The notes below the pieces were generated by a model that had not been told where the DNA came from, did no database searches, and saw nothing but the letters and a program-made list of their open reading frames with translations. A program made the position numbers and the translations under genes. A stretch of DNA of 64,000 bases from Bugula neritina (taxonomy: Eukaryota; Animalia; Bryozoa): assembly GCA_964035545.1 (NCBI GenBank), contig OZ037772.1:124001-188000 (forward strand), read 5' to 3'. Positions 29,861-47,300 of this stretch are shown here, piece by piece. The stretch's first letter is position 1, and each line of letters opens with the position of its first letter.

Positions 29861-30081
29861 TGCAGGTAGTAGAATCAGGCAAGCTAAAGATAATACCAGA
29901 CTATCACAAAGTCACTTGGTACAAATGGCTGAGGAACCCCAGGGACTGGTGTATCTCCAGACAGCTATGGTGGGGGCACAGAATACCAGCCTACTTTGTG
30001 CAGATCCAGGGGCAACCTAAGGCTGAGGTATGACTCATTCTTCATCTTGTCTTGTGTTATTTATAGAAAGCATTTTATCAA

Positions 30082-30825
30082 GTATATGTTGAGTATGTAT
30101 TGAGTATATATTGAGAATTTATTGAGTAGATATTGAGTATATATTGAGTGTGTATTGAGTATATATTGAGTATGTATTGAGTATTTATTGAGTATATATT
30201 GAGTATGTATTAAGTATATATTGAGTGTATATTGAGTATGTATTAAGTATATATTGAGTATGTATTAAGTATATATTGAGTATATATTGAGTATATATTG
30301 AGTATGTATTGAGTATATATTGAGTATATATTGAGTATATATTGAGTGTATATTGAGTATGTATTAAGTATATATTGAGTATATATTGAGTATGTATTGA
30401 GTATATATTGAGTATGTATTAAGTATATATTGAGTATATATTGAGTATATATTGAGTATGTATTGAGTATATATTGAGTATGTATTAAGTATATACTGAG
30501 TATATGTTGAGTATATATTGAGTATATATTGAGTATATATTGAGTATGTATTGAGTATATATTGAGTATGTATTGAGTATATATTGAGTATATATTGAGT
30601 ATATGTTGAGTATATATTGAGTAGATATTGAGTATGTATTGAGTATGTATTGAGTATTTATTGAGTAGATATTGAGTATATATTGAGTATGTATTGCGTA
30701 TATATTGAGTATGTATTGAGTATGTATTGAGTATGTATTGAGTATATATTGAGTATATATTGAGTATGTATTGAGTATGTATTGAGTATATATTGAGTAT
30801 GTATTGAGTATGTATTGAGTATGTA
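30082..30825. repeat. 11-bp minisatellite (TATATATTGAG)
   Basis: Tandem array. Confidence 0.97.
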
Positions 30826-31255
30826 CACACCTCCAACTTTCTCTTCTCCTTTATAGTAAAGCAGCGAGCTACATTTCTCTAACTACTTATTGATAATTTA
30901 CTTTCTTTTCTTCACGAACTAGACATTTCCTTTGAGTAAATTAACCCCAGTTTCAGTTTGTCAGAGAAGACAACTCTGAACATTGTTCCATTTTTTGCCT
31001 TTTATACAGATGAAACAGTGCTGGACACTTGGTTTAGTTCTGGAATATTTCCTTTCTAGACTATGGGGTGGCCAGATAACACCCCCGACCTGCAAGCCTA
31101 CTACCCGGGTACTCTGCTAGAGACTGGATATTCTCTTCTTCTGGGTGGCCCGCATGGTCATGATGGGACAATTCCTACTCGGGGAGCTTCCCTTCAAAGA
31201 GGTACGTCTGGTGGTAGAAAGTGTCTTCTGCTTCTTCTGATGTCTGTGGTTACCA

Positions 31256-31500
31256 TTCTATATCTATATCCTTTAGATGACTCTATTCAATATACTTATT
31301 CTATATCTATACCCTTTAGATGACTCTATTCAATATACTTATTTTATATCTATATCCTTTAGATGATTCTATTCAATATACTTATTCTATATCTTTACCC
31401 TTTAGATGACTCTATTCAATATACTTATTCTATATCTATATCCTTTAGATGACTCTATTCAATTAACTTATTCTATGTCTATACCCTTTAGATGACTCTG
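31256..31500. repeat. 43-bp minisatellite
   Basis: CCTTTAGATGACTCTATTCAATATACTTATTCTATATCTATA units. Confidence 0.93.
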
Positions 31501-31729
31501 TTTAATTAGCTGATAACTTTATAGTTTTTTTCAATTTAGAGTAACGCTGCTATTATTGGGGAAACAATCTCTTGTATAACCAATGAATGTGAAATGTGCT
31601 GTTTTGACAGTCATGGGACTGAAGATCAAATGCATTCTGTGTCTAAATTGATAAACTCAAACTAAATGGCAAGAGGTTTTAATGGCTGTATGTGTATGCA
31701 AGATTATACATTATAGAAAGAGTATATAA

Positions 31730-32492
31730 ATATTATGTAATATATCTTATATTATGTAATATATCTTATATTATGTAATATATCTTATATTATGTAATAT
31801 ATCTTATATTATGTAATATATCTTATAATATGTAATATATCTTATATCATGTAATATATCTTATATTATGTAATCTATCTTATATTGTGTAATATATTTT
31901 ATATTATGTAATATATCTTATATTATGTAATGTATCTTATATTATGTAATATATCTTATATTATGTAATATATCTTATATTATGTAATATATCTTATATT
32001 ATGTAATATATCTTATATTATGTAATATATCTTATATCATGTAATATATCTTACAATATGTAATATATCTTATATCATGTAATATATCTTATATTATGTA
32101 ATATATCTTATATTATGTAATATATCTTATATTGTGTAATCTATCTTATATTGTGTAATATATTTTATATTATGTAATATATCTTATATTATGTAATATA
32201 TCTTATATTATGTAATATATCTTATATTATGTAATATATCTTATATTATGTAATATATCTTATATTATGTAATATATCTTATATTATGTAATATATCCTA
32301 TATATCCTATATATTATGTAATATATCTTATATTATGTAATATATCTTATATCATGTAATATATCTTATATTGTGTAATATATCTTATATCATGTAATAT
32401 ATCTTATATTATGTAATATATCTTATATTATGTGATATATCTTATATTATGTAATATATCTTATATTATGTAATATAACTTATGTTATGTAA
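31730..32492. repeat. 19-bp minisatellite (TATTATGTAATATATCTTA)
   Basis: Tandem array. Confidence 0.97.
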
Positions 32493-33112
32493 TTATTGCT
32501 GAGACTAGTGTAATTTGATGGTGGCTGGTAGAGCAGTGTTTGCTGGTTGAACTCAGGTGGCCGTGGTTGGTTCTTGTTAAGTATTTAATATGTGATAATG
32601 TTGGAGTAGCTGCAGTAGCAGTATTATTAGAAGTAGACACGTGGGTGTGTTCTATATAAGAGCCACAGGCTAAGTTTGTGGGTCAAGGTCAATACAGTTG
32701 TATAATGAAACACTACTTTCTGTTAGAATATTTACTTCATGTATGTAATACTTATATTATATATCTTCTCTCCTGTATAATCATATTTGCTGAGGGGGTA
32801 AATTTCTATGTTGAGTTTCTCCATGTTGTCATTTATTATGAAGTAAACAGTAGAGCAGCTCAGTGAATTATTCAATACTGACTGGTAGAACTTTATTATC
32901 TTCAACATAATCTGCTTAGTTGCATCTTTAAAGGAAGTCTTTCTGAGTGAGAAATATATTAGAAATTTATTGTATTATCATCGAATATATTTCAGTTACT
33001 ATATTATATTAGAAAGTAGAAACTTGCTTGTAGTGGTGTCAGCTGTTGTGATGTCACTGTAGTCTGTCTGTTTGTCTCAAACTGATTCAATCTGACATTA
33101 TATTTTTTAAAG

Positions 33113-33249: not shown

Positions 33250-33374
33250 ACTTATCAGCTACAGTCTACTAATAATTAGCTCAGTGAAGTCACCAATGCA
33301 CACCCATAGTACATGTCAAATATAATATATTGTGTTCTACTCACAGTATAATATTATATATTCCACAGGACTTA

Positions 33375-33704
33375 GCCTAGGGCCACACGGTGCTTATTTT
33401 CGCATGCGAAAATTGAAATCACAAGTAGCAAAGGTGTCCACTGTAGCGTCAGTGATGCGTGATAAATAAAGCTTTCATTTTTAAATCGCACTCGCAATTT
33501 ACTGGAATGTAGCACTAAAATAAAGAAATTGGGCTCGCCTAATAACTACCAGCCAATTAGGTGACTACGACAGAGACGATTTGCACTTGCGTTGAAAATG
33601 CAGAGCGACAAGTGCGAACGTTTTCTCAACGCGCACAGTGGACACCTTTGCTACTTGTGATTTCAATTTTCGCATGCGAAATTACGCACCGTGTGGCCCT
33701 AGGC
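33375..33704. mobile_element. PIF/Harbinger (Tourist-like) MITE
   Basis: ~70-bp TIRs starting GCCTAGGGCCACACGGTGC; TTA TSD on both sides. Confidence 0.9.
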
Positions 33705-34400
33705 TTACACTGCTTATATGCAGTATTTGATGTTGATTAGTAATGATTATGTAACATATTTACTCTGCTATGCTGTCAAGACTCTGTAGTCACATTTACT
33801 CAATAAAGTTTGTTTGTAGAAATTATTTTTTGCTGGTTTATGACTCATCTACTTACTTAGTCATCACAATTTAAATATTATTTACTTTTTCATGTCAATA
33901 ACTCTGTTACTATTACTTCCTTATCAAGTAGTAGCTGTATGTAACTTGTGTGTAAGTTAGTTTACATGATACAGAGTAGATCAACTATTCCACAGATATG
34001 CATTTCATAAGTAATGTATATAAAAAGATTCACTGCAGTAAATTCTTAGCAATTTTCTCCAGCAATAGCTTAACAAAAGCCTCAGAAACTACAAATCTTA
34101 AAGCCATGTTCCAATATGTGAGACTATACAACAAAACTCTACTTTTAACACAATGGCTGGTGTTTTATGTAATGAGTGTGCAAAAGCAAATATACACATT
34201 GTATGAGCTATGTGCCATGGAGGGAAAGCAGACAGTTTTCTATGTAGACAGTAAGTTGGGGGTTAATGGGGTTGACCAGCAGTGAGCAACACCTTGAATG
34301 ACAATAAAGACTGTAGATCAGAGCATATTGATAGGTTATAAACATAGAAATATATCAGAGGTTATGAATGTCAACATATTATTAACATCATAATCACCGG

Positions 34401-34671
34401 TGTTGTGTTGTATAGATAAATACTGCAATGAATTACTACCAACTTTCTTACTGTCACTATACACTTTATTATCTCAAATCTCGAAGCTAACTGACCCACT
34501 TGATAAACAAACAGTATGTCACAACAGTTACATAGCACTTTTAAAACCACAACATAATTACTTTGACAGCATAATTGTATAGCTATAACATTCCACAATA
34601 TAAGGCTACTAGCAGGTATAAGTCATGGGATAATATATACATAGCTTTAGTAAACAGATACAAACATTACA
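34401..34671 (-). repeat. 3' LTR
   Basis: Direct repeat of 38437-38707; preceded on the minus strand by the polypurine tract AAGGGGAAA (34672-34680). Confidence 0.95.
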
Positions 34672-34707
34672 TTTCCCCTTGATCTCAAGATCATAATTGG
34701 TTTACAG

Positions 34708-37700
34708 TTAATTAATATAAAAGTCTGCCATCCACTGAGGTGGTCTCCTGTCTCTTGTTATACGGCTTCCTTCTTCCTGGTTGGCCTCATCCACAACTTC
34801 AGGATTGCCAATTCCCCAACTGCAAGTTTCACTGCCATCTAAATCACTGTTATTGCCATCACTTTCATCAGATACCTCCTCATTAATACCAAGACCAGCA
34901 TCACCACACAGTTCAATATCAACTTCAGTGCACAAATGACTGATAGCATCATTTTGATCACCTTCATTTTGTCGTGCAAGCCTCACATCAGCAACATGGC
35001 GGTTTACTCCATCTATTTCTACAACTTTGTCAGATATTAGCTTTGTGACAGTGCCTTGCTTCCATTTTGTATCACATCTAACCTTCCCCGGCTTAACAAA
35101 AACATTATCTCCTACTTTGTAGGAATTAGTCCCTGTCTGTTTAGCAGGGAAATCTCTTTCTAATTCCTTTTCTACAGGCTCCCTTGGCAACCTCGGATGA
35201 TAAGCATGAATAGCAGCAGCAGGTATGATACCAACAGAGTTAGGTGTATTGTTGTACCAAAACACCATGCATTCAGGGGTTTTTCCAGTTCTCGCCACCA
35301 TCCTTTTTATTGTTCTATGGTTTCTCTCCACTATTCCATTTCCAGAGTGCTTGTATGCACAACAAAATATCAGTGAAACACCCCAGTCTTCTAACAAGTT
35401 CTTGGTTTTACTGCTCTTAAAGCACGGTCCATAGTCACAAATCAGCTCTTGGGGAGGACCTCTCTCAAGAAAAATTCTGCACAAATGCTTGAGTGCTTGG
35501 TCTGCAGTCTCATTGCTCATAGCAACCCAAATTGCAAATCTACTCGGTCCACAGTCCACTACTGTAAGATATGGTTTACCAGAAACGAATGCTACGTCAA
35601 CTGCAACTCTCTGCCAGTTTTCCTCCACATCTAAACTTCCATGTTTCCACGCTATTGGAGCAGGATCTATTTGTTTGCACATTTGGCAAGATTTCACAAT
35701 TTCTGATACAACTCTTCTATCCACTGGTATCTTCATCCTACTTACAACATGCATTGTCCGATCTACACCTAAGTGATGCCTGTTGTGAAGCTCAATAACT
35801 TTTCTACCATGCTTTGTCATCCCTAGCGCAACAACTTTTGAATCAGGCTTATTCTTTTGAACTTTCTGTAGCCACCTTTTGGGAACACGAGTTAGAATAT
35901 CAGACAGGTTCTTTTCTGATGGAACCAGCTTGATAGACAGCATAAGTCCATATTCGTCAATTAGTTGATTAACAATCTCTAGTCTTCTTTTAACAACCAT
36001 CTCGCTCAACCCACTGACCTTGGGTCTTTTTGTGTTCTCTAAAATAGACCGAAGCCAACTATAAACAGTTGCAGAGTCTGTGACCAACACTAACTTCTTA
36101 ATTTTCCACCTCAGGGCAAGATTTAGTCCTTTTATAGTTGCTTCCAGCTCTGCTACATTGATGTGAGCATCATCCTTTCTAAGCCATGCACAATCTTCCA
36201 CCACATGACCATCTATTTGCAAACAACATCCCATTGACAAGCTACTTGCATCACACCACATAATGCCAGGCTTGTCTTTATCAACTTCCCAAATGCCTCT
36301 CACTGGGTCTTCTTTAGTGACTTTTTCCATTATTTCTTCAATGATGTCTTGTGAATAGCTCGGAATGCGTTCTTCCCAGGCAACATCATTGGCGCTTCTT
36401 TTGACAAAACTACATGACGTTCTCAACCACCCAGCCACAGGGTAATGTCCAACCAACTTGCCACAGAGTGAGAAAAGTTCTCTTTTGGTCATGTTTTCCT
36501 GCAGCATAGGAAGTTTGCCATCTCTACACCATGCAAAGTTTCCATTGCCTACATCTCTCACTCTCAATCCTAACACTCGAGCATCATTAAGGGGTTCTGG
36601 CTCCTTAGTCACTAACCCATACATTAACAGCAGCTGTCTCACTTTATCTACCCCTACTAAACTCTTGTTGACCCAGATATCATCTATGTAATGGTCAGTT
36701 CCTTGCTTGACCTCACTATCTTGTGCCAGTACTGTGCTAATTATCCTTGACATTATTTTTGGAGCAACACTTAATCCAAATCCCATTCGAGTCATCACAT
36801 ACAAATTACCTTTATACTTTACAGTTTGAAATTTCTGTAAGCTCCTACTCACATGAATTTGCAGATATGCCTTTTTTAAGTCTAAAAGACAGGCTTCAGT
36901 CCCTTGCTTTCTCCACTCACGCACCTTTTCTTGGCAAATCGCAGTGTCCTGTCCTGGCATACTCTCAACATGGCTATTGAGCTCTCGATAATCCATAACA
37001 GGTCGAACCTTTTTGGGTTTGTTTGGCTGACTTGCAGCCATCAATGGAATTACACCATCAACTTTGCCATGTTTCTGAACGTTATACGGCTCCAACCACC
37101 CATCTGCTACCCACTGATCTAATTCTGCTTCATACTCGTTTATATGCTCTGGTGGCACTGCATACTGTGCACACTGGTTGCTTAACTGTGGCTCTCCTAT
37201 CTGCCACTTCCACTCAACAGTCCACCTCTGCCCATCAAAGACAGCTATAAAATCTGTATCCTCAATTCTTAATTTTGAAGTTGTTGGTGATATAGGTGCG
37301 GCTAATGCACACATCTTAGAGTGCCAAGAAACTTTACCATCTTTGTCAAATGTTACTCCCCCCAACTTCTTAATAATGTCAAACCCTAAAATTACATCTG
37401 CACCACACACCAGACTTGGTGCAACTAAACAGCGGTTTCTTACCACTACCCCATCAACCACTAACTCTACTACCACCTCGCCACCACACACTGTTGTCTC
37501 TCCATTTAGCATTGTCACTACATGTTGAGGCCCGCGCAGCCACCCTCTGATTTCTTTACACAACTTTTCACTGATTACTGTTTGTTGACAGCCTGAATCC
37601 ACTAATGTTTTTATACGACGAGTACATCCTGAATTATTTGTGTATACATATATGAAGGGTAGCACCTCATTAGCTACTGCAGCCTTGGGGAAACACCCGG

Positions 37701-37743
37701 TGCTGATGGTTCCCCTTGCCCGTTTCCCAGCTTTTCTGGGCAA
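34708..37743 (-). CDS. pol: Pol (protease, RT, RNase H, integrase), -1 frame relative to gag
   Basis: LVDSGC protease; LDLKKAYLQI and YIDD RT; CDASS / AELEA / TDS RNase H; H..HH...CQMC zinc finger and D,D(35)E integrase. Uninterrupted 1011-codon frame. Confidence 0.95.
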   Translation of the reverse strand: MPRKAGKRARGTISTGCFPKAAVANEVLPFIYVYTNNSGCTRRIKTLVDSGCQQTVISEKLCKEIRGWLRGPQHVVTMLNGETTVCGGEVVVELVVDGVVVRNRCLVAPSLVCGADVILGFDIIKKLGGVTFDKDGKVSWHSKMCALAAPISPTTSKLRIEDTDFIAVFDGQRWTVEWKWQIGEPQLSNQCAQYAVPPEHINEYEAELDQWVADGWLEPYNVQKHGKVDGVIPLMAASQPNKPKKVRPVMDYRELNSHVESMPGQDTAICQEKVREWRKQGTEACLLDLKKAYLQIHVSRSLQKFQTVKYKGNLYVMTRMGFGLSVAPKIMSRIISTVLAQDSEVKQGTDHYIDDIWVNKSLVGVDKVRQLLLMYGLVTKEPEPLNDARVLGLRVRDVGNGNFAWCRDGKLPMLQENMTKRELFSLCGKLVGHYPVAGWLRTSCSFVKRSANDVAWEERIPSYSQDIIEEIMEKVTKEDPVRGIWEVDKDKPGIMWCDASSLSMGCCLQIDGHVVEDCAWLRKDDAHINVAELEATIKGLNLALRWKIKKLVLVTDSATVYSWLRSILENTKRPKVSGLSEMVVKRRLEIVNQLIDEYGLMLSIKLVPSEKNLSDILTRVPKRWLQKVQKNKPDSKVVALGMTKHGRKVIELHNRHHLGVDRTMHVVSRMKIPVDRRVVSEIVKSCQMCKQIDPAPIAWKHGSLDVEENWQRVAVDVAFVSGKPYLTVVDCGPSRFAIWVAMSNETADQALKHLCRIFLERGPPQELICDYGPCFKSSKTKNLLEDWGVSLIFCCAYKHSGNGIVERNHRTIKRMVARTGKTPECMVFWYNNTPNSVGIIPAAAIHAYHPRLPREPVEKELERDFPAKQTGTNSYKVGDNVFVKPGKVRCDTKWKQGTVTKLISDKVVEIDGVNRHVADVRLARQNEGDQNDAISHLCTEVDIELCGDAGLGINEEVSDESDGNNSDLDGSETCSWGIGNPEVVDEANQEEGSRITRDRRPPQWMADFYIN

Positions 37744-38408
37744 TTTCTTGCTATATGTGATGTTTGATCACAAATAAAACATCTCCTGACATATCTTGGC
37801 TGATAATTTCTACGGGTTGACTTGGGACATTCACGAGCCATATGTGAAGTTGAGCCACAACTGAAGCAAGCTCCCTTTGCCTTTTGGTAGCCAGCTGCAC
37901 ACGCCATCTCACTTTCTCTTGTACTCAGCATTATTCTTGCTCTAGCCACCAGTTCGGGCAAACTCAATTTCTCTACAGAAGCCATGGACTTTAACTGCAA
38001 GGACACATCACCTGGCAACCCTGCCATGAAAGCGCATTTTGAAATTGGCTCTGCATCCTTCTGTCCAATATGTGCCACTAACCTTTTTATGTCTGCTAAG
38101 TAGACATCAACTGGCTCTCCATCACGCAGCACACGCTTCTGTAGCTCATCGTATGCAGTATAGCAGTTTATTCCAAAAGCTGTTAGTAGTGCAGCTTTGA
38201 GCTTCCCATACTCCTCTTTGTCACTTTCTGGTAGCTGCTTATATACTGCAAACGCTGGACCAGCCAGGAACAGGGGCAAAAATGATTCTAGATCAGTTAT
38301 TTTCTGCAGCTTTGCCACCAGCTCTAATTTATCAAGCCACTCACTGAATTCTCCACTGTTGCTGTCTTCATATTTACTTATTATGTCCGAGAGCTTGACT
38401 GATGCCAT
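37674..38408 (-). CDS. gag: Gag, 244 aa, two CCHC zinc knuckles
   Basis: CFSCGSTSHMAREC and CFICDQTSHIARNC; the ATG lies 28 nt after the 5' LTR. Confidence 0.92.
   Translation of the reverse strand: MASVKLSDIISKYEDSNSGEFSEWLDKLELVAKLQKITDLESFLPLFLAGPAFAVYKQLPESDKEEYGKLKAALLTAFGINCYTAYDELQKRVLRDGEPVDVYLADIKRLVAHIGQKDAEPISKCAFMAGLPGDVSLQLKSMASVEKLSLPELVARARIMLSTRESEMACAAGYQKAKGACFSCGSTSHMARECPKSTRRNYQPRYVRRCFICDQTSHIARNCPEKLGNGQGEPSAPGVSPRLQ
37679..37728 (-). promoter_or_regulatory. -1 ribosomal frameshift signal
   Basis: G GGA AAC heptamer in the gag frame (37722-37728), 6-nt spacer, GGGGAAC/GTTTCCC stem with loop CAGC able to pair with downstream GCTG. Confidence 0.75.
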
Positions 38409-38424
38409 TGTAATATTGTAATAT

Positions 38425-38436
38425 GCCGAAATAGCT
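38425..38436 (-). promoter_or_regulatory. Putative primer-binding site complementary to the 5' end of tRNA-Phe(GAA)
   Basis: The plus strand reads GCCGAAATAGCT directly abutting the LTR; this equals nt 1-12 of the conserved eukaryotic tRNA-Phe(GAA). No TGG-type PBS is present. Confidence 0.75.
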
Positions 38437-38707
38437 TGTTGTGTTGTATAGATAAATACTGCAATGAATTACTACCAACTTTCTTACTGTCACTATACAC
38501 TTTATTATCTCAAATCTCGAAGCTAACTGACCCACTTGATAAACAAACAGTATGTCACAACAGTTACATAGCACTTTTAAAACCACAACATAATTACTTT
38601 GACAGCATAATTGTATAGCTATAACATTCCACAATATAAGGCTACTAGCAGGTATAAGTCATGGGATAATATATACATAGCTTTAGTAAACAGATACAAA
38701 CATTACA
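38437..38707 (-). repeat. 5' LTR
   Basis: Direct repeat of 34401-34671; contains AATAAA on the minus strand. Confidence 0.95.
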
Positions 38708-39552
38708 ACCGGCTTTCCATGTACCGATCTCAGGGAGATCGATCCATGGAAAGATGTCAAAGATCGATCTCAGTCGTTCTGAGCTGGTCGGTCTGTAGAG
38801 CTCGAACTCAGATCGATCTCATAGCAATAAGACCATGGAAAGACGAAAGATCGATCCGAGAAGTAGAAAAATGACTGCTCGCTAAAATGTTGTCTGCTAA
38901 TGAAAATGATAACTTATTGTTAATTACTAAGCAAAGTACTTAATAATTAGGATAGCCATTTTTTCAAGTGACAAAACTTTGACCTTTAGTAAAATGATTA
39001 AGAAAACTTAATTATGTAAAATTATAGACGGTAGAAGATACAAAAAGTGAGAGCATTTAAATTGAATTTAAACGACCAGTATAACGCACTGTCATTAGTT
39101 AATTGCTGCGTAATTTTAAGCCTAATAGTCCCGTAAGTTTATGAATAAGCTGCACAACAGCTATTAATTTTATATAAGCTGCCAAGCTAAAATATTAAAA
39201 TAAATTATCTTAAATTGGCCGAATTACTTCATATTGAAAGCTTTATTGCGTAGAGTTTATAGCTGACGTTAAATTTTAGACTATGAAAATTTTGTTTTTC
39301 AACAGCAGTAGCTTTTATCACTTAGGTGAGTGAAAAAAATATACTATTAATGTAGTCTTCACCTAAGAGGAGGCAACTCCGAGAGATCGATCTGACACTC
39401 TCATGGAAAAATGATCGAGCTGAGCACATTTCTCAGATCGATCTCGCTGAGATCGATCTGAGATCGGTACATGGAAAGCCCGTGAATATGAACCAAGTTA
39501 AATTAGTTAAATCTTGCAAGTTGTGCTCTTAATTTTATATTAGCAAGGCTAA

Positions 39553-44300: not shown

Positions 44301-47300
44301 TTTCGTTTCACACAGTTTGTTACCAGCTCTTTGAGCTGTTGCCTTGGTTTCAAGATTACATGTACTGTATATGTATAACTACAACTCCTTCATTTTATGT
44401 AGTTCATTTATTTATCCACACTACATTTTACAATCTAAGTTTACTTCTACATTCATGTGTCTAATATTCACTCTACCCTAGCTGCGAATGGAGGTTAACA
44501 AGTTTCTTGAAAGTAAAAAACTAACAGGAAGTTTTTGCAGTCAGTCGAACTGATCTCCATAAACTACTTATTGCATACCTAGTAGATATATTTGCTGTAC
44601 TAAAAACTCTGAACCTAAAATGAATGAGTATAATCATCAACTCACTGCTTTTAATACCAGCATCAATGCTTTCAAAGCTGAACTGAAGTTGTGGCAGACA
44701 CTGGTCCATGTCAAACACAAAGTGCTTTTTTCTACACTCAATGAATTATTAGGAAAACAAGCCGTCCCAGATTTTCTTTATAAATCAAATTACAATTTTT
44801 TAAAAGGGGGGAAACTTAATAGAAAACATTTATAAAAAGGAGGATGGTATGAAGAAGGTGGGACACCACTGAGTTAAAGCTATGCCTATACCATCTTATC
44901 AAGGAAACAGACACTTGAAGGATGAAATATACTAAAATATATTCAACATAACAGTGAGAATATAAACTCCTGCACCATCCACTTCTGTCTCACACAAAAC
45001 TTAATGCTGACAAACTTACTTCCTCTTTTACTGTTACATAACTCACTTTAATAATAAAATAATAAATAACAGGTTCTTGTAACATTTCTCAGTTTCTTTC
45101 TACAGAAATAGAAACAGCAAGTAAATACCTGTCTTATCCTTACAGCCAGTCCTCATATCACATCTCATACAGAATATCTGGTGACACTTGGAACACACTT
45201 CTGTCAGCTGTTCCTCTTTATGATGTTCACATTCAGTTATAGTATATCTTTGGGGAGAAGCTCTGTAGACCTCAATGTCAATAAACTGATGTCTATCTCC
45301 CATCAGCTCTATGTGATTCTGTATAATAAAGGTCAACAGTTTAGTTGGTTGTATTTTCACCAACAAGTCTGTCATAGTTGACTCACTGCACTGTGAAACT
45401 GTGTGTTTAGTATAAAAAGTCACACAGACTCAACATTTCTTTTCAATAATATTCTACATACAAACCAGAACTGGTTTAGTAACTAATCTTGAGAAATGAT
45501 ATAAGAAAGACTCACTTCTTGATGCTGCTGACACAATTTCTTTTGACTCTCAAGACAAAACACAGCAGCTTGTGTTCCACCTTTACACACATCGCAGGGA
45601 ATGGGTGCAGGTTTGGGTGGAGACTTGTATTCTAAGGGGTCTCCATGCTGAGCTACTGGTAGTGTTGTGGGATCTGTGATGTCATAGTGATCTTTCCTAC
45701 AATATATAGCAATCAGTATGTTACCTGTGTTAGCTGTGTTTAGTATATCTCAAGTAATGAAATACTCCATCCACACACACAGCTATGTCCTTGACAAATA
45801 CTCAAATAAATACTCATCACTCATCAACACACATTCATTATATAGACCACAGGCTATCACACAAACACACTTGACTATATTATGTACCTAATATGCTGTA
45901 AAATAGTCACTCATGACAAAGAACTGCTACTCAACAAATAGACTCAACTGTAACTTGTAGAGTAAAATGACAAGACAAATTACTAGTTAACTACTGAGTG
46001 GGGGCCATATTGTCAATAATTATTCACTTTTGTTGCAAGTTTGTGCAATGCAACTAATTACTGAGGGGTGAATTCTGAAGAGCCATTACTACAACATACT
46101 ACAACTATTCCCTGCCACTCTTAGCCTAGGGCCACACGGTGCGTATTTTCGCATGCGAAAATTAAAATCACGGGTAGCAAAGGTGTCCACTGTAGCGTCA
46201 GTGATCACTCGCTTTCAATAAAACGCAATTTACTGGAATATAGCACTAAATAAAGAAATTGGGCTCGCTGAATAACTACCAGCCAATTAGGTGACGACGA
46301 CAGAGACGATTCGCACTTGCGTTGAAAATGCAGAGCGACAAGTGCGAACGTTTTCTCAACGCGCATCGTGTGGCCCTAGGCTAACTGCTAGGAGTGGTGC
46401 GAAACTGTCATTTCATCATCCTTGGCAATGTGTCAAGAGCTAGTGCACTGTGAGTGCGTGTCACGTGTGAGTGTTGCCTATCTCGTGCAGCTATCATAAG
46501 AAGAGTGAGTCATACACTGCGTTTCCATTATCGCATTATGCGAATGGATTTTCTCATTCGCCCTATGGAAACAGTTTCATCGAAGCAAAACCGCAGCCGG
46601 AAATTACACCGAACGGCTCCTTCGATGAAAATTTTCCTTCGCATTATGCGCATCATGGAAATGGTTCCTTCGGTTAAATCGAATGAAACCTTTTGTGCCG
46701 GAGGCAGAGATCAGCATTTGTGGCGGCTAGTTACATAGTTACGCGATGCTAACAATAATTATAGGTTACAACCTACGCTAAAGTGTACTTCGACTTTTAA
46801 AAATTTAAATTATTCTATTTATCCTAGCTGCTATTATTTAAAATAATTACTAATCATCTTAAATTTATAAAACTATTTTGCAAGCCAAAGCTTTCTCAAG
46901 CTAAAAATAAGTTGACAGCTAATTTCATTTTGAAAATTTAAATTACTTTTAAGTTGCGTTTATACCTCTGCTGAAAAAAGTACCGAGTTTAAGTTAATAA
47001 TGCTTGTCCGGGTACCCCTTTATAGTCAAACCGAAACTCGTTGAAATCATATTGATGCGGTTGCTCACTTTCTGAAATTGAAATTTGACTCGCATAATAG
47101 CTATTTGATGCCCTTTGTAAACGTCGTGAATTAGTGAAGCGGAAAGCATAAAAGTGATAATTGAGAAGGCGTAGGCTATATAGTTATAACCGTATAAGTA
47201 CGTTGTCTAATCGCCAAAGTAATAACTAAATAACGATGTTTACAAGGAGTTATTACTCCTATTCTAAAATTGGCCGATTAAGTTATCACAGTACAAAAAT

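Follow-up and report, generated by a model that had tools for sequence, protein, structure and literature searches.

A predicted primer-binding site complementary to the 5' end of tRNA-Phe in a compact LTR retrotransposon of Bugula neritina and its relatives

Reverse transcription of LTR retroelements and retroviruses is started, in the textbook account, in one of three ways: from the 3' end of a host tRNA, from a half-tRNA cut in the anticodon loop, or by self-priming. In the canonical mode of retroviruses and Ty3/gypsy elements, the primer-binding site (PBS) begins with TGG and pairs with at most 18 nt of the 3' end of a tRNA that is not cut, and in the self-priming element Tf1 an 11-nt 5'-terminal RNA is released by the element's RNase H. 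The RNA that supplies the Tf1 primer is the element's own transcript (PMC4600332). In the known half-tRNA cases, initiator tRNA-Met (or a tRNA for Ile, Tyr or Asp) is cut in the anticodon loop, which yields a primer of about 39 nt for a PBS that pairs with the anticodon-stem region, and the elements concerned belong without exception to Ty1/copia (PMC10886601, PMC6317226). Surveys and discussions of PBS types distinguish the tRNA 3' end, the half-tRNA (in Ty1/copia only), self-priming and elements without a PBS (PMC6317226, PMC10886601), and Skipper of Dictyostelium, which is Ty3/gypsy-like, carries a degenerate polypyrimidine run instead of a TGG PBS and has no identified partner (PMC5006619).

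Here we describe an LTR retrotransposon from the bryozoan Bugula neritina, found in a stretch of 64,000 nucleotides (the window, that is, the whole of the DNA analyzed), that departs from each of these systems while retaining features of all of them. With canonical retroviral and Ty3/gypsy priming it shares the use of a host tRNA, a PBS adjacent to U5, a polypurine tract at the 3' LTR and, as proposed here, unwinding of the acceptor stem by nucleocapsid, but the strand of the acceptor stem that faces the PBS is the opposite one. The likeness to copia of Drosophila and Ty5 of yeast lies in a host tRNA that would be cut internally, with the 5' fragment as primer, and in a PBS that lacks TGG; unlike in those elements, it is nt 1-12 that are paired, the proposed cut falls in the D stem, the tRNA is tRNA-Phe (tRNA-Lys in one member of the clade) and the pol order is protease, reverse transcriptase (RT), RNase H, integrase. 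As in Tf1, Tf2, Tj1 and sushi elements, a short PBS (12 nt here, 11 there) lies flush against the LTR and is complementary to the very 5' terminus of an RNA, and we propose for it that the primer is likewise released by cutting where a short RNA:RNA duplex ends, with the same run-off of plus-strand strong-stop synthesis; in contrast to Tf1, the LTR lacks a complement of the PBS, which pairs instead in trans with a host tRNA. Skipper has likewise given up the TGG PBS, though here the partner can be identified and the match is exact.

Structure and affiliation of the element

The element occupies positions 38707..34401 on the minus strand of the window. Its 5' LTR (271 nt, TGTAATG...CAACA, 38437..38707) is 100% identical to the 3' LTR (34401..34671), and the LTR borders are set by three features, namely the identical 271-nt repeat, the TG..CA termini and a 5-bp target-site duplication (TSD), CCGGT, which lies immediately outside both LTRs (5' copy at 38708..38712, 3' copy at 34396..34400). 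The gag ORF (37674..38408, minus strand) encodes 244 aa with a CCHC zinc knuckle (PF00098, E 2e-9). It overlaps by 70 nt with the pol ORF (34708..37743, minus strand), which lies in the -1 frame relative to gag and encodes 1011 aa comprising protease, RT, DUF7047, RNase H and integrase, as assigned from Pfam matches, catalytic columns and a structure model. Within the overlap and in the gag register, the heptamer G GGA AAC (37722..37728, minus strand), assigned from the sequence, is a candidate and likely site of programmed -1 frameshifting. The polypurine tract AAGGGGAAA (34672..34680, minus strand) directly abuts the 3' LTR.

Three full-length identical copies are present in the genome at separate sites, with the TSDs CCGGT, CTTGT and TCTAC; as the copies are identical while their sites and TSDs differ, the window's family must have moved very recently, which bears out the original prediction that the element is intact and young. 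The whole element is also covered, at 95-99% identity, by contigs of probable RNA runs, and on the basis of the three identical copies and these probable transcripts the family looks active. Contigs of two of the probable RNA runs, X2 and X5, match the LTR, the PBS and about 9 bases of the leader and then diverge (at window position 38416), and they appear to represent a sister subfamily that shares only the LTR-PBS end with the window's family. Two further repeat features were observed in the surroundings. At 30010-32600, just outside the neighborhood of the element, three tandem arrays adjoin one another, with periods of 11, 43 and 19 nt, and the segments 33371-33653 and 46120-46383, which are 91-95% identical and 12.7 kb apart, are copies of another repeat that brackets the element.

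In sequence order, the Pfam matches place gag first, followed by protease, RT, RNase H and a C-terminal integrase. Two LTRs with TG..CA ends, a short TSD, a gag with a zinc knuckle and this order of pol domains are the features of Ty3/gypsy elements (Metaviridae), and the gene order of Ty1/copia, with integrase before RT, to which half-tRNA priming belongs, is not the one found. The label Gypsy that the element had been given is thus upheld by gene order but not by its RNase H, since the Ty3/gypsy Pfam models PF17917 and PF17919 find no match in the RT/RNase H of the element. The RNase H instead matches PF13456 and PF00075, and the thumb corresponds to DUF7047. Both kinds of RNase H are present among the atlas neighbors of pol, relatives bearing DUF7047 are common in arthropods and other animals, and the catalytic residues of the RNase H (the Asp/Glu columns) are invariant across the family. 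The structure model of pol resembles a retroviral protease-RT-RNase H, and a Foldseek search with the whole of pol returned generic retroviral protease-RT matches; a sequence search of the PDB returned retroviral integrases only, with no match to the RT. In the model, a three-helix thumb (residues 420-477) stands between the RT palm and a single RNase H (residues 482-606). A dual RNase H of the Odin or retroviral kind, in which a degenerate tether domain precedes a second RNase H, was considered and rejected, as the model places one RNase H directly after the three-helix thumb. The paper that describes Odin makes no mention of a PBS (PMC9040795).

A 12-nt site facing the 5' end of tRNA-Phe

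The 5' LTR ends in ...CAACA at 38437 and is followed by A-GCTATTTCGGC-A-TATTACAATATTACA (38436..38409, 28 nt) and by the gag ATG at 38408. No TGG-initiated PBS follows the 5' LTR of this element, and the 28-nt leader is as the original prediction had described it. Read as RNA, the sequence directly after the terminal CA of the LTR is predicted to be AGCUAUUUCGGC, then 16 non-conserved bases (38409..38424, minus strand; information of about 0.1-0.35 bits) and the gag AUG. The predicted PBS is the 12-mer AGCTATTTCGGC (38425..38436, minus strand), which abuts the terminal CA of the LTR, is conserved throughout the clade and is the exact complement of nt 1-12 of the host tRNA-Phe(GAA).

The tRNA side of this match was examined in the host genome (216 Mb), which contains five tRNA-Phe(GAA) genes of identical sequence, all beginning with GCCGAAATAGCTCAG and ending with TTTCGGCA. 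Positions 38436..38425 form 12 Watson-Crick pairs out of 12 with nt 1-12 of this tRNA, and the original prediction, which had started from the 5' sequence of eukaryotic tRNA-Phe in general, is borne out exactly by all five genes of the host. The partner regions in the tRNA are nt 1-7 of the acceptor stem, then U8 and A9, then G10-U12 of the D stem, and C13 lies opposite the final A of the LTR, so that pairing cannot extend beyond nt 12. Genome-wide, the 15-mer GCCGAAATAGCTCAG occurs in the five tRNA-Phe genes only. Among tRNA-like starts of the form GCC....TAGCTCAG in the genome, the tRNA-Phe sequence is unique to Phe, and the other common type is GCCCGGA.

The suggestion that the leader mimics the 3' acceptor strand up to and including the discriminator A is not supported, since only 31 of 56 elements have A at position +13 (0.35 bits) and in several of them this A is that of the gag ATG itself. 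Nor was further conserved complementarity to nt 13-76 of tRNA-Phe found: a comparison of these nucleotides with the region from -150 to +250 around the PBS gave 24 complementary 7-mers, spread over 19 elements, and the reversed tRNA gave 20. Extended contacts between tRNA and template, in the style of Ty1, Ty3 or HIV, were accordingly rejected, no position being shared between elements.

Conservation and variation of the site within the clade

The 15-mer pattern ACA+AGCTA+NNNN+GGC, in which ACA is the LTR end, occurs 155 times in the host genome compared with 9 times for a reversed control, and nearly all of the 155 matches are of the TTTC type or its CpG-decayed TTTT form. As judged from the sequences, the match of the 12-mer is far beyond chance. 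Close copies of the element keep the 12-mer, and changes are seen only in copies of 90% identity or less, where all of them are CpG transitions. Through a gag search we found further families, and at least seven divergent families in the same genome, with gag identities of 23-62% and unrelated LTRs, carry ACA|AGCTATTTCGGC followed by a short leader. In a neighboring clade of the same genome (gag 29% identical, 540-nt LTRs), on the other hand, the PBS is an ordinary TGG-initiated one, which makes the odd PBS a trait of the clade and not of the host.

Several LTR sequences in this genome deserve mention in their own right. An abundant second LTR family with 540-nt LTRs (L152-L154, at G000:C1:6.10 Mb, C7:7.46 Mb and C1:32.59 Mb) has gag-pol ORFs of 900-1500 aa and the conventional TGG-initiated PBS TTGGGGGCTGCTCCGGG. 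Two loci (L020 and L021, at G000:C5:8.19 and 8.36 Mb) have LTRs that are 95% like those of the window, followed by the 12-mer and then by unrelated internal sequence, and are possibly non-autonomous derivatives that keep only LTR and PBS. Five LTR copies (L022, L023, L025, L027 and L028) all continue into the same non-PBS sequence, AGCATGATG....

Relatives of the pol protein number in the hundreds and lie mostly on contigs of about 4 kb. We took 83 loci, 3 by exact protein look-up (including one from the bryozoan Watersipora) and 80 from metagenome assemblies. About 55 distinct relatives, from metagenomes and Watersipora, have pol identities of 34-72% and unrelated LTRs, and they nevertheless show the same layout of LTR-end ACA, 12-mer, a leader of 0-43 nt and the gag ATG. 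Wherever the 5' part of a relative is present, the AGCTA-NNNN-GGC 12-mer stands directly after the LTR-end ACA, so that the alignment across the family and its relatives, by which the original prediction was to be judged, reveals a site conserved at its post-LTR position despite LTRs that have nothing in common. In a profile of 56 distinct elements, whose invariant bases are partly pre-selected by the pattern search, the LTR-end ACA (-3..-1) carries 1.7-1.9 bits, AGCTA (+1..+5) 2 bits and GGC (+10..+12) about 1.9-2 bits, while +6..+9 are variable and no consensus exists from +13 onward (0.35 bits or less). Where loci did not fit the pattern, the sequence upstream of gag was inspected without bias, and this turned up only near-variants, with a 1-base deletion, a 1-base insertion and, in one case, CGCTACCGAGGC.

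This profile can be read directly against the tRNA. The near-invariant AGCTA faces U8-A9-G10-C11-U12 and GGC faces G1-C2-C3, the positions +6..+9, which alone are variable, face nt 4-7 of the acceptor stem, and conservation ends at nt 1 of the tRNA. Acceptor-stem nt 4-7 are positions at which tRNAs of one specificity differ between taxa. The types of 12-mer are clustered on the pol tree, yet at least 16 changes of type are required, as would be expected if the PBS adapts to, or copies, the tRNA of the host. We infer from these sequences that the variant 12-mers (with TCGC, TCAC, TCTA, CCTC, TCCC or TCTC at the variable positions) may covary with host tRNA. No tRNA genes were found on the contigs of the metagenome relatives taken, and a string search of the literature for tRNA 5' ends complementary to the variant 12-mers found only that of tRNA-Lys(CUU).

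The member concerned, L109, is the most distant and a deep-branching one (34% pol identity), with LTR borders (TG..CA) that are confirmed by the head/tail overlap of its contig. After the terminal CA it reads AGCTAGCCGGGC, the exact complement of GCCCGGCTAGCT, with which mature tRNA-Lys(CUU) begins according to primers in a published study (PMC12140204); the 12-mer of L109 is thus the exact complement of nt 1-12 of that tRNA. That two different tRNAs are matched over the same 12 positions and in the same geometry would be difficult to account for if the partner were anything but the 5' end of a tRNA. No Lys-type PBS matching the host's own tRNA-Lys(CTT) was found in the Bugula genome.

Two relatives have unusual sequence upstream of gag. 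In L123 (1833-1950), the 12-mer PBS is separated from the gag ATG by about 100 nt that resemble a tRNA or a tRNA-derived SINE and are followed by a T run, and ARAGORN made no tRNA call on this segment. In L115 (2741-2752), of which the contig holds a single LTR copy so that the LTR border is not fixed, CGCTACCGAGGC lies upstream of gag and its complement, GCCTCGGTAGCG, resembles the start of another tRNA, perhaps an elongator Met-like one.

Proposed priming from a 5'-terminal tRNA fragment

The observations above suggest that the 12-mer is the minus-strand PBS and that the primer is the 5'-terminal 12 nt of the tRNA, cut between nt 12 and 13, a reading that we consider probable. Priming from a very short 5' tRNA fragment with its 3'-OH at nt 12 had been put forward from the window by itself, and comparative evidence now speaks for it: the match in the host, the conservation across the clade, the confinement of variation to the acceptor stem, the switch to tRNA-Lys(CUU), the exclusion of self-priming and the youth and mobility of the element. 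In the proposed mechanism, the CCHC nucleocapsid part of Gag would presumably open the acceptor and D stems of the tRNA, and a cut in the tRNA where the 12-bp RNA:RNA duplex ends, between U12 and C13, would leave a 12-nt primer whose 3'-OH lies opposite the first base of the PBS. RT would extend this primer into U5 to yield minus-strand strong-stop DNA, and plus-strand strong-stop synthesis would later run off the 5' end of the primer. Such a run-off may be why the PBS is exactly 12 nt long and why conservation ends at nt 1 of the tRNA, and linear cDNA would have flush TG..CA ends because the PBS abuts CA and the polypurine tract abuts TG. It is the geometry of the PBS that requires the primer's 3'-OH to be on nt 12 of the tRNA, and both priming from nt 12 and the identity of the cutting enzyme are inferences. 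Our preferred candidate for the latter, by analogy, is the element's own RNase H, which is favored because of the precedent of Tf1, where an 11-nt 5'-terminal RNA is released from an RNA:RNA duplex; the alternative is a host nuclease. To our knowledge, a 12-nt 5' tRNA fragment that ends in the D stem is not among the usual classes of tRNA fragments.

The alternative that survives best is that the 12-mer, while paired with the 5' end of the tRNA as proposed, serves some purpose other than priming, such as recruitment or packaging of tRNA-Phe, control of gag translation, or as a target of 5' tRNA fragments of the host, with a different primer in use. The argument for priming is comparative and a primer duplex of 12 bp is short, although 11 suffice for Tf1, and because the 12-mer adjoins the gag start codon a translational role is conceivable. 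Against this, the 12-mer always abuts the terminal CA of the LTR, which is where the 3' end of a primer must define the end of U5. In six elements (L125, L095, L134, L144, L099 and L150) the gag ATG follows immediately after the 12-mer; the whole leader is then the 12-mer, and no other PBS is possible between LTR and gag. Neither a TGG site nor a self-primer is present to take over the task, and a target of silencing is not something that the element itself would conserve. We therefore regard a role other than priming as unlikely.

Still less probable, in our estimation, is a primer other than a cut tRNA, either another cellular RNA with a natural 3' end in ...GCCGAAAUAGCU or an uncut tRNA that, as in retrons, offers an internal 2'-OH near nt 12 as the point of priming. 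What speaks for such a primer is that the model preferred here is weakest where it needs an unusual cut in the D stem. The confinement of the 15-mer GCCGAAATAGCTCAG to five tRNA-Phe genes in the genome argues against another RNA, as do the variable positions of the 12-mer, which are those of the acceptor stem while the invariant ones correspond to the conserved U8-U12, and the fact that in L109 these 12 positions match a second tRNA, Lys(CUU). We know of no branch priming in LTR elements.

Self-priming of the Tf1/sushi type, in which the first bases of the element's transcript would fold onto the 12-mer and be cut to form the primer, resembles the present case in PBS length (12 nt against 11 in Tf1), in the absence of TGG and in the direct abutment on the LTR, yet we judge it extremely improbable and consider it refuted by the search of the LTRs, since matches to the PBS complement within 350 nt upstream are no better than those in shuffled sequence (mean best of 4.42 against 4.45 mismatches in 52 elements), the best match in the window's own LTR has 5 mismatches, and conservation of a 12-mer across unrelated LTRs is not what it predicts; it could be revived only if transcripts began outside the LTR with GCCGAAATAGCT.

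Priming from the cut 5' end of a tRNA is apparently undescribed. In the literature searched, outside the scope of which lay subscription journals and Repbase notes, there is no description of a PBS complementary to a tRNA 5' end, and the string of the 12-mer appears there only as probes for tRNA-Phe; the search for precedent that the original prediction had called for thus found none in these papers, though we acknowledge a small but real chance that the mode has been mentioned somewhere before. Taking the clade as a whole, we lean, with only slightly better than even confidence, toward a more general view. According to this view, a widespread clade of compact elements (about 4 kb), in animals and in unidentified hosts of marine and freshwater metagenomes, would prime with the 5'-terminal 12 nt of a host tRNA, Phe or, in one branch, Lys, which the RNase H of the element itself would cut free where a 12-bp RNA:RNA duplex ends. 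Such priming would constitute a third mode of tRNA priming with a mechanistic link to the self-priming of Tf1, and the PBS may be renewed from the primer at every cycle and would in that way follow the acceptor stem of the host.

If the reading is correct, it would add a fourth way of starting reverse transcription, the third that relies on tRNA. The precise cut between nt 12 and 13 of the tRNA that it needs would mean either that a retroelement RNase H has a new substrate or that a host nuclease is put to a new use. To our understanding, standard tools for LTR annotation look for a PBS only as the complement of tRNA 3' ends, and methods confined to the 3' end would report the elements of this clade as having no PBS. 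The finding would also imply that 5', and not 3', tRNA fragments could interfere with elements of the clade. Because the family in the window looks active, the mechanism could be tested directly in the host animal.
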